A stretch of 64,000 nucleotides of DNA from Salpingoeca rosetta (taxonomy: Eukaryota > Protista > Choanoflagellata). The number at the start of each line of letters is the position of its first letter. Position 1 is the stretch's first letter. The notes beneath the pieces are model-generated. The model had not been told where the DNA came from. It made no database searches and saw only the letters and a program-made list of their open reading frames with translations. Shown piece by piece: positions 28,960 to 31,467 of this stretch. The position numbers and the translations under genes were made by a program. The stretch spans positions 129,898 to 193,897 of the forward strand of contig JAWQFM010000031.1 in the NCBI GenBank assembly GCA_033442325.1, read 5' to 3'.

Positions 28960-29496
28960 CGTCTTGTTTGTTTGTGTGTCAGCAATCACTGAATTCAGTA
29001 CTTGAGACTGATGTCAGTTCGGTGTGTGCTTGCAAGCAGTGGCAAGCGCGTGCATGTGCGTGCTTCGATCTCCTCAGCGCCTCTAGGCCTCTCACTCCTT
29101 CACTCGGCTGTGATTGTAGGATTGTGCCTGGCGGCGAGTTCGTACGACGCTGTAATCGCGACAACGGGGGACTGGAACAAAACAAAGCCACATGTGCCTG
29201 TGCGGAGGACACCGAGGGCAATGAATCCAAACACGCACACACGCACACGCACACCACTGAACGCAGCAAGCCACACTCACAACAACAGCATGGAGATGGC
29301 ACTGCACCAGTCAGCGAGCGTGGTGTCAGAGCGGTCATCATCCGGGCGGAAGATGAAGGCTCGCCTGGCAACGGCGCCATGCACCTCCTCAGCACGCTCG
29401 AAAGGGGGTGCGTAGGTTTGCAGCACGTCGTCAAACAGAAACGCACTCACACACTCACACACTCACACACTCACACACTCACACACACTCACACAA

Positions 29497-29529
<33 letters not shown>

Positions 29530-29552
29530 CACACACACACACACACACACAC

Positions 29553-31467
29553 TCACAAGATACTGCAGCAACGGCTTGAGCCACTCGGCACATCCACACC
29601 AGCATGGCGAATGCGCCTCAGGTCGTGCTCAGCTCTTTGCGTGGAAGGGTGGTCTGGTCCAACCGTGGCTGTGAAGACGTCCAGTGCCCGTTGCATGTAG
29701 GCACAGGCCTGCTCCTTGTCGCCAAGTTCAGCATGCACGAAGGCGATGTTGGTCAGTGTCATCGCTGTGCTCGGGTGCTTCTCGCCCAACGTCTGAGTGG
29801 TGATAGCGAGGTCCTTTTCGTAATAGGCAATCGCCTTTTCATGCTCACCCTTGCTGCAGTAAGCATTGCCGAGGTTGTTGTAGGTCTCAGCTGTACTCGG
29901 GTGCTTCTCGCCCAGCGTCTGAATGGTGATGGCAAGGTCCTTTTCGTAATGGTCAATGGCCTTGTCATACTCACCCTTGCTGCAGTAAGCATTGCCGAGG
30001 TTGTTGTAGGCCGTCGCTGTGCTCGGGTGCTTCTCGCCCAACGTCTGAGTGGTGATAGCGAGGTCCTTTTCGTAATAGGTAATCGCCTTATCATGCTCGC
30101 CCTTGATGCTGTACGCGTTGCCGAGGTTGTTGTACGTGCTTGCTGTGCTCGGGTGCTTCTCGCCCAGCTTGCCCACCAAGATTTCACGGGCCTTCTCAAA
30201 GTATGCAATCGCCTTATCGTTGTCCCCCTTGTCATCGTAGGCAAGGCCGAGGTTGTTGTACAACCCAGCCACGTTCTCTCCCTTTTCCCCTTCAATGCGT
30301 AGATAGGTCGCCAGAGCTGCCTCGTAGTACGCGACTGCCCTGCCGTGCTCGCCAAACGTGTTCAGCACAGTCCCAACTTGACCACACAACACCGCGAACG
30401 CCCCTGTGTTGTCTTCGCCCCTTGCCTGCATGGCCTCCACCGCAGCCGCCGCCTTCTCCAAGCACCACGCGCGCAGCTGGTCCTTGACGGCCTGGTTGAG
30501 AGCCGCAAAGCCAACGCTGTCCTGGGTGGCTTGAAAGATCATGGCCTTGTCATTTGGGTTGAAGGCCTCCGCACGCTCGGCTTGCACGCGCACCAGCGTA
30601 TCCGTGACGGCTTCATACTCGCCTTGGATGGCCCGTTCCAGCGCCTTCTCCTCGCTTTTGGGCAGGCGGATGTTGACCTCTGTGCCCTCGTTGCTGATGC
30701 CGCAGAAGATCTCCCACAGGCACCACGCACGCGTCAGTGGCACGGGGTCTCGCCACGGCATCAACACCAGCAGCACGCGTCCAATGTTGGCAATCGACTC
30801 CTTGAACGTCGTGCTCCACCTGCGGGTGTGTGGTGGGCGAGGGTGTTGGGGTGGAAGGGAGGGAGGAGAGGGCGTGTGAAAGGAGAGAGCGTGTGAGGGC
30901 GTGCGCAAGAAACATTGCACTACCAATCCACACACAGCTGCACACACACACACACACAGGTTTTCACACACACACACACAGCTGTACACACACACATTGA
31001 CAAACACACTCACACACACACACACATTGACAAACACACACACACATACACACACACACACACAAAACGCACCACTCTTGTGGGAGGTTCGCCGTGACAT
31101 TGGCGTTTTGGTTGTTCATGAAGAGGTCAAACCAGAAGAACACGGGCTGGCCGTCTTCCTTGCTTGCTTGCTCCTCCGCAAACTCGAGCAAGACGTTCAA
31201 CACGTCTGCGATCTTGTACCGCCACGCGTGCGACACAAACACAGTGGCCTTGCCCACGTCGGTGCATGGTGACTGCTTGCGCAAGAGATCGACGTAGGCG
31301 CAGCTGGCCTGTTGTGTGCGTGGCACCACGAGTTGCTTGCAGGCATCCGCTGTTGTCATCTCAGTGTACGTGTCGGGAAACTCCTTCGTCAGGTCTGCGA
31401 GGAAGGTCTTGATCGCCTCCACAGACACGCCGTCCGTCAGGCGGTGCTCGTCGTTGCCATCGGCCAT
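29553..31467 (-). CDS. HET/TIR-like N-terminal domain + 42-aa TPR repeats + C-terminal CaaX (CCSIL); exons 31467-31073 and 30819-29553
   Basis: Phase-2 intron splits LPQEW|WSTTF. Motifs FVSHAW (31222-31239), FFWFDLFMNNQ and LTRAWCLWE (30711-30737); TPR units LGEKHPSTAxxYNNLGNAY...KAI.YYEKDLAI. Confidence 0.88.
29761..30270 (-). repeat. Coding tandem repeat array, 126-bp unit (42-aa TPR), ~4 highly similar copies
   Basis: GTGCTTCTCGCCCA recurs at 29775, 29901, 30027 and 30153 (exact 126-nt period). Confidence 0.95.

Follow-up and report, generated by a model that had tools for sequence, protein, structure and literature searches.

A TIR-like domain joined directly to variable tetratricopeptide repeats, with no nucleotide-binding oligomerisation domain, in a gene family of Salpingoeca rosetta

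Receptors of the NLR/STAND type possess a central nucleotide-binding oligomerisation domain (NOD) of the NACHT or NB-ARC class and C-terminal repeats which form a superstructure. TIR-STING proteins of bacteria and the oyster as well as TIR-SAVED proteins are built differently, since a ligand module is joined directly to the TIR domain without an NTPase, and they are activated by ligand-driven formation of filaments or oligomers. Here, we describe a gene of the choanoflagellate Salpingoeca rosetta whose product has the C-terminal repeats of the NLR/STAND receptors, lacks their central NOD and consists of a TIR-like domain fused directly to an array of tetratricopeptide repeats (TPRs). The gene is located at positions 29553-31467, on the minus strand, of a stretch of 64,000 nucleotides (the window) which comprises positions 129,898 to 193,897 of contig JAWQFM010000031.1 in the GenBank assembly GCA_033442325.1. 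All coordinates refer to this window.

Further systems which come close to this protein have been described. The fungal HET domain, the cell-death effector of HET-E, HET-D, HET-R and TOL, often stands beside internally conserved TPRs of 42 residues, occurs in many copies per genome and is placed upstream of NACHT in NLRs. Conserved 42-residue units, variable in number and with their variation on presumed binding-face residues of the helices, are present in fungal NB-ARC/NACHT-TPR proteins and in plant TIR-NBARC-TPR (TNP) proteins, both of which have a central NOD (PMC4986451). Positive selection has been shown for the TPR repeats of fungal NLRs, and Dyrka et al. (2014) linked HET to TIR domains of the PdTIR type, proposed an adaptor role for HET and reported HET-like sequences in choanoflagellates, one S. 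rosetta protein included (PMC4986451). Another "extended TIR-like" family, TeTIR, occurs in the WD40 and TPR proteins TEP1, NWD1/2 and NPHP3. Its domains comprise 200-350 residues, are missed by standard models, contain a catalytic Glu and an RWG loop and are located invariably directly upstream of NACHT, and the TeTIR of TEP1 is a proven nicotinamide adenine dinucleotide (NAD+)-cleaving enzyme, or NADase (preprint 10.64898/2026.09.21.753143). Furthermore, a canonical TIR of S. rosetta produces cyclic ADP-ribose in a Glu-dependent manner (preprint 10.64898/2026.04.20.719644). Since both the canonical S. rosetta TIR and TeTIR are active, catalysis by divergent TIRs is plausible. In the searchable literature, no paper was found which describes the family presented here, its architecture or its activity.

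The region 29553-31467 is the exact coding span of a two-exon gene, from the start codon ATG at 31467 to the stop codon TGA at 29555-29553. Joining exon 1, the split codon of Trp132 and exon 2 results in a protein of 553 residues which is identical, letter for letter, to P0001, the database record "mbre TPR repeat protein [Salpingoeca rosetta]" of 553 residues found by a word-indexed protein search with exon 2. Searches were run exon by exon, and all steps requiring the whole protein were carried out on this record. Of its domains, Pfam sees the TPR families alone. Exon 2 was matched by TPR_12 (E 4e-92) and TPR_10 (E 5e-63), with solely TPR-type matches among the 25 shown, and the NPHP3-type TPR model stayed below its threshold (85 bits, cut-off 100). 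The Pfam scan of exon 1 gave zero matches, residues 1-264 are without any Pfam family, and an NCBIfam scan returned noise alone. No Walker A motif (P-loop), NACHT or NB-ARC was detected in the protein by Pfam with both exons. In the model of full-length P0001 (predicted local distance difference test, pLDDT, 93.5; predicted template modelling score, pTM, 0.88), the helix formed by residues 236-264 leads straight into the TPR helices at 271-537, and the last 16 residues are disordered. In this model, the N-terminal domain is joined directly and rigidly to the TPRs by one long helix, which leaves no space for a NOD.

The listed relatives of this protein lack a NOD as well. A second word search with a paralogue of 736 residues as the query was scored on the N-terminal domain alone and admitted proteins of 405-1288 residues. 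Among the matches listed there was no NACHT, NB-ARC or AAA; they carried TPR, ankyrin, PH or LIM domains or nothing instead. With both word searches combined, a NOD was absent from the Pfam records of 225 different listed family members with lengths of 249-1136 residues. A search of a protein-language-model atlas additionally revealed fusions of the domain to DUF285 and to methyltransferases, as well as stand-alone forms in haptophytes, green algae, diatoms and oomycetes.

For structural comparison of the N-terminal domain, a domain-only homologue of 249 residues (P0051), which is 46% identical to P0001 in a family alignment of 110 sequences (A2), was folded as a stand-in, because every close S. 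rosetta paralogue examined carries the same intron within the domain. The search for an intron-free paralogue had yielded three long "open frames", all of which read through this intron. The AlphaFold2 model of P0051 was of high quality (pLDDT 93.1, pTM 0.90). In a Foldseek search against the PDB, the first 10 matches were plant TIR domains (SNC1, RPPT, RPP1 and RPS4; probability 0.82-0.99, best E 5e-3), and the later ones were mostly TIR domains as well, such as RPV1, RUN1, MAL, SPARTA and AbTir. Independently of Foldseek, an exhaustive VIA alignment over 48,161 representative chains placed the TIR domain of SARM1 at the top (Z 7.6 over 115 residues, root-mean-square deviation 3.2), followed by IL-1RAcP, MyD88, TIR-1, RPP1, MAL, ThsB and TRIF. 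When the top 1000 chains from Foldseek were rescored with VIA, TIR domains accounted for 48 of the 50 best, with a Z of 8.0 for SARM1 and of 7.8 for RPP1, RUN1 and RPV1 (128-137 of about 166 residues aligned). Overall, the VIA matches with Z 7.6-8.0 aligned 113-137 residues. TIR-STING and TIR-SAVED structures were also among the VIA matches (7un8, 6wt7 and 7qqk). As Z-scores below 8 are middling, the argument for the fold rests on the uniformity of these matches and on their agreement with the sequence evidence. Both the fusion of an effector domain to TPRs without a NOD and the TIR-type fold had been proposed in a first-pass annotation made from the letters of the window, and both are borne out, the former by Pfam and the single linking helix of the model and the latter by the Foldseek and VIA matches, nearly all of which are TIR domains.

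Sequence comparisons gave a consistent picture. The sole recurrent Pfam match was TIR_2, found in seven of 16 domain-only homologues (best E 0.005), beside one SEFIR match. The best match among PDB profiles was the bacterial TIR protein PdTIR (E 0.16), with F-I-S-H-A-W and W-x-D shared, and PADLOC detected bSEFIR in three members (E 0.007). A profile of 106 family domains was compared by hhalign with one built from seven canonical TIR_2 domains of the S. rosetta genome. In this comparison (E 3.5e-4, probability 37%), 81 columns from strand A through helix C were aligned and W-C-L-W-E of the family was set on C-x-x-E of the TIR domains, the Glu of which is the only invariant acidic residue of the seven TIRs. 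A shallower comparison of 16 with seven sequences reached a probability of 10%, and its alignment ended before the Glu. All of these sequence signals are weak, and they point uniformly to a TIR-type domain. We consider it very probable that the N-terminal domain belongs to the TIR superfamily by its fold and that its Glu is functional. Canonical TIR_2 domains gave 52 six-frame matches in the S. rosetta genome, 29 of them above the Pfam cut-off. Since none of the 52 TIR_2 loci coincides with a locus of the family, the TIR-like/TPR family is separate from the canonical TIR_2 genes.

Three motifs, all encoded on the minus strand, mark the domain. FVSHAW (residues 77-82, 31222-31239) forms the end of strand A and occurs in PdTIR as the same F-[IV]-S-H-A-W. 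FFWFDLFMNNQ (residues 110-120, 31108-31140) comprises strand B and the start of an enlarged BB region, with W112 and D114 being nearly invariant. LTRAWCLWE (residues 160-168, 30711-30737) lies at the start of helix C and includes a WxxxE motif, the Glu of which (Glu168) takes the place of the catalytic residue of TIR domains. Glu168 is encoded by GAG at 30713-30711 and sits in a helix of residues 163-174 in the full-length model. The sequence R-A-W-C-L-x-E is present in 109 of the 110 aligned homologues, which stem from many protist groups, and the remaining one has a gap. S79, H80, W82, W112, D114 and Q120 are each retained in 87-95% of the 110 rows, the exceptions being mostly gaps, and D222 is retained in 98%. 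Owing to this conservation, the three motifs are not a product of chance. The first-pass annotation had quoted these motifs and the Glu codon, all of which were recovered in the coding sequence, and it had assigned the final Glu to the catalytic position of TIR domains, which agrees with its alignment by hhalign to the invariant Glu of the canonical S. rosetta TIRs.

Compared with enzymatic TIR domains (SARM1, RPP1, RUN1, AbTir and SPARTA TIR-APAZ), which are the best structural matches with Z 7.2-8.0, the strands A, B and C and helix C follow in the same order, the Glu of WxxxE is aligned to the TIR Glu and strand A has the F-x-S-H-A-W of PdTIR. In contrast, the S. rosetta domain comprises about 260 residues instead of about 140 and has an N-terminal helical extension and extra C-terminal helices. 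Its BB region is enlarged (W-W-x-T-T-F), and it has invariant blocks of its own, W-F-D...N-Q and P-W-x-D-P-x-P-L-T-R. Compared by description, TeTIR resembles the domain in its size, its catalytic Glu and its escape from standard models, and differs in its constant place before NACHT and in the RWG loop; P0001 has no NACHT according to Pfam and no R-W-G within residues 110-160.

The order of the three blocks had led the first-pass annotation to diagnose a HET signature. The blocks are present and conserved among the homologues, and by eye and from the literature their order resembles that of HET, namely aromatic-x-S-[HY]-x-W, W-x-D...Q and R-x-W-x-x-x-E. Membership in the HET family was not supported. 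The Pfam HET model (PF06985) had zero matches at E ≤ 10 in the 24 homologues scanned and is absent from the Pfam records of all 225 listed family members; a six-frame genome search with the HET model gave no matches but carries no information, as its positive controls were equally silent. As the Pfam model matched none of the homologues scanned, the domain is filed as divergent TIR superfamily and not as a HET member, and the likeness to HET seems to lie solely in the order of the motifs. We describe the domain as an enlarged and divergent member of the TIR (STIR) superfamily which is invisible to Pfam and has HET-like motifs.

In the gene, also on the minus strand, exon 1 (31073-31467) encodes residues 1-131, provides bases 1 and 2 of the Trp132 codon and ends at a GTGCGT donor. 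It contains the N-terminal helical extension, strand A with FVSHAW and strand B with FFWFD...NNQ. The intron (30820-31072) has a length of 253 bp, is in phase 2 with GT..AG borders, consists largely of a (TG)n microsatellite and splits the TIR-like domain after residue 131. Its position is common to all 19 paralogue copies examined. Exon 2 (29553-30819) provides the last base of the Trp132 codon, residues 133-553 and the stop codon TGA. The second half of the TIR-like domain (30423-30819, residues 132-264) comprises helix B, strand C, helix C, strand D and four more helices, the last of which (236-264) enters the TPR array. A (TG)n/(CA)n microsatellite fills the intron (30820-31072) as well as the 3' flank (29444-29557). 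In several paralogues the intron stays open in frame, and mechanical lists of open reading frames then give false "open frames" of 900-1000 residues.

The TPR array consists of six units of 42 residues and of kinesin-light-chain (KLC) type at 29643-30398 on the minus strand (residues 273-524). At the protein level, units 3-5 are mutually 81-88% identical, and the underlying DNA is a 126-bp tandem repeat of 3.2 copies with 87% match. The TPRs are variable between paralogues, as the first-pass annotation had supposed. They are internally conserved and have the 42-residue repeat type which Dyrka et al. described in fungal NLRs (PMC4986451). Variability was mapped on 127 units pooled from 24 S. 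rosetta paralogues, in which two to nine full-length units per paralogue were detected. The scaffold positions A2, G9, G16, A21, G37, H40 and P41 are almost fixed, and entropy peaks at unit positions 13, 10, 3, 32, 14 and 6. Positions 3, 6, 10, 13 and 14 recur on helix A at intervals of three to four residues and so form a single face, which we take, from general knowledge of TPR structures, to be the ligand-binding groove. The ratio of nonsynonymous to synonymous differences (pN/pS) was determined by Nei-Gojobori counting in 64 independent nearest-neighbour pairs of TPR units from 20 genes. It was 0.53 for the TPR units overall and 0.19 for the N-terminal domain of the same genes, and therefore the head is conserved and the repeats evolve much more freely. 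Positions 3, 10, 13, 14 and 32 reached pN/pS values of 1.0-1.3. As no site is significantly above 1 after correction for 42 tests, we make no claim of positive selection for the TPRs.

The C-terminus of P0001 reads ...RCCSIL, with a Cys at position -4 followed by a-a-X. The CaaX-type prenylation motif CSIL (residues 550-553, 29556-29567, minus strand) is preceded by a second Cys and lies on the tail which is disordered in the model. By the usual rule, a CaaX box with X = L is a signal for geranylgeranylation; the Cys next to it is a candidate palmitoylation site. Judged from its sequence, the CCSIL tail is probably an anchor with a geranylgeranyl and a palmitoyl group. A CC-a-a-X ending was found in seven of 24 S. 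rosetta paralogues, four of which share GGCCSVL; five others end in a PH-domain tail and three in a Cys-rich hydrophobic tail. Because three classes of membrane-type tails occur among the paralogues (C-termini of P0001-P0025; L001:940-3978 and L003:668-3745), membrane targeting looks like a theme of the family. In several paralogues, the stretch that separates the TPRs from the tail also carries a duplicated R-N-L-L-L-R-F-[IL] motif.

The number of paralogues, which the first-pass annotation had marked as worth counting, is large. A search of the 55-Mb genome with exon 1 gave 66 matches, dispersed over many contigs, and 29 of them have identities of 81-100%, the first being the gene itself. 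This corresponds to at least 60 paralogues in S. rosetta. The similarity between paralogues ends at the borders of the coding sequence, except for one short patch in the 3' flank, and on these grounds the idea that the gene travels as a transposon passenger was rejected. The patch (29228-29391) has its counterpart, at an identity of about 78%, in the 3' flank of the paralogue L015 and may be a shared element of the 3' untranslated region. Beyond S. rosetta, the family is present in oomycetes, haptophytes, green algae, diatoms, chytrids and others and is thus not special to the relatives of animals. The only animal record among the listed matches, P0061, is annotated in the acoel Symsagittifera roscoffensis, on a contig of 60.8 Mb, and may be a gene of the animal or of its algal symbiont.

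On balance, we lean towards a functional cytosolic protein, probably tethered to a membrane, which combines a TIR-like enzyme domain, ligand-binding TPRs and a lipid anchor. The TIR-like domain (residues 1-264) would cleave an N-glycosidic bond by means of Glu168, with NAD+ or a related nucleotide as the most likely substrate; the chances of NAD(P)+ being the substrate are about even. The variable face of helix A would be the likely binding surface for a protein or peptide ligand, and the lipid anchor at CCSIL would tether the protein to the membrane. The first-pass annotation had likewise proposed a putative two-part sensor-effector, in which recognition by the TPRs would be followed by NAD+ cleavage or signalling. 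Because no NTPase switch is present, activation would have to come from ligand binding itself. Ligand-templated clustering of TIR-like domains at the membrane would then replace the oligomerisation driven by a NOD, comparable to TIR-STING and TIR-SAVED. Unlike in these, the sensor is a TPR solenoid, likely for a protein or peptide and not for a cyclic nucleotide, and assembly is putative here. Paralogues with a common, conserved enzyme domain and differing TPRs fit the pattern of a recognition repertoire, immune or for self versus non-self, although such an immune or allorecognition role is doubtful rather than likely.

Several observations weigh against this interpretation. Structural Z-scores of 7.6-8.0 are in the range which the tool itself rates as middling (below 8), and nucleoside 2-deoxyribosyltransferases are interleaved among the VIA matches at Z about 7. 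The domain exceeds a TIR domain by about 120 residues, and of the core strands only four can be recognised clearly in the model. None of the TIR family models (PF01582, PF13676 and PF08357) reached its curated threshold, the TIR_2 scores of the homologues being 16-17 bits where 28 is the cut-off, the probability given by hhalign was low, and among the named clusters of the atlas search no TIR or HET cluster was near the domain. Moreover, the TPRs lack a site with significant excess of nonsynonymous change, and TIR NADases normally need oligomerisation.

The same data were weighed against other explanations, of which a housekeeping adaptor survives best. In this case, KLC-type TPRs would bind cargo or partners at membranes, the N-terminal domain would be a conserved enzymatic or docking module which serves ordinary trafficking or signalling instead of immunity or cell death, and the paralogues would serve many cargoes. 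This would suit the KLC/NPHP3 type of the repeats, the name "kinesin light chain" which some members bear in their source databases, the common membrane-targeting tails of the paralogues (CaaX, PH or hydrophobic), their dispersed, unclustered copies with similarity confined to the coding sequence save the 3'-flank patch, and the lack of demonstrable positive selection at any site. However, the N-terminal domain differs from the heptad region of KLC, a TIR-type fold in which the Glu and several polar residues are invariant points to catalysis, and a conserved head with variable repeats in at least 60 recent paralogues is the pattern of a recognition family. We therefore regard a plain adaptor as unlikely.

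Deoxyribosyltransferases, DNPH1 and MilB share the fold and the catalytic Glu with TIR domains, and as a nucleotide N-glycosidase of their kind the domain would act on nucleosides or nucleotides instead of NAD+. Nucleoside 2-deoxyribosyltransferases and MilB are indeed among the structural matches with Z 5.5-7.0, near the scores of TIR domains, and the authors of the TeTIR study state that TIR and MilB/DNPH share mechanism and catalytic Glu (preprint 10.64898/2026.09.21.753143). Yet the weak sequence matches are all to TIR, SEFIR or PdTIR and none to a deoxyribosyltransferase, the blocks F-x-S-H-A-W and W-C-x-x-E are of TIR type, and TIR domains dominate the 50 best rescored structural matches, which makes this kind of enzyme quite unlikely. 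It is highly unlikely that the domain is TIR-like but not catalytic and, like those of MyD88 or MAL, serves for assembly or as an adaptor which signals to another partner by homotypic oligomerisation: MyD88, MAL, TRIF, TRAM and IL-1RAcP score equal to enzymatic TIRs in structure, and an adaptor role has been put forward for HET (PMC4986451), but the Glu and the Ser, His, Asp, Gln, Arg and Cys of the motifs are conserved across distant protists, which is typical of an active site over an interface, and the N-terminal domain is under purifying selection in all paralogues. Slightly less probable still is a mere shared flavodoxin-like arrangement in a new family of unrelated function, since, despite Z-scores at the level where the tool warns of common arrangements, the hhalign value and the lack of any assigned Pfam, NCBIfam or atlas family, independent lines agree: the structural matches are nearly all TIR, the weak profile matches go to TIR_2, SEFIR and bSEFIR, and each of the three blocks finds its place, in the right order, on strand A, strand B and helix C, with Glu on Glu.

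The preferred reading, a membrane-tethered TIR-like enzyme with ligand-binding TPRs, can be extended to the family as a whole. Its members would then be pan-protist, NOD-less immune or allorecognition receptors at membranes, in which recognition of a foreign or non-self protein by the variable TPR face directly clusters a TIR/HET-related NADase and leads to NAD+ depletion or nucleotide signalling. This extended proposal is on the unlikely side. If it were true, this domain would bridge, as the missing intermediate, the gap from bacterial TIRs to HET, the cell-death domain of fungi, and the 60 or more copies in S. rosetta would constitute the main recognition repertoire of this organism. The family could show how TIR enzymes are controlled without STAND oligomerisation, in a testable case which is invisible to standard annotation, and could link the HET domain of fungal cell death to TIR through an intermediate family. 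Given the presence of the domain in oomycetes, diatoms, haptophytes, green algae and chytrids, findings made in S. rosetta would serve to annotate very many proteins at once.

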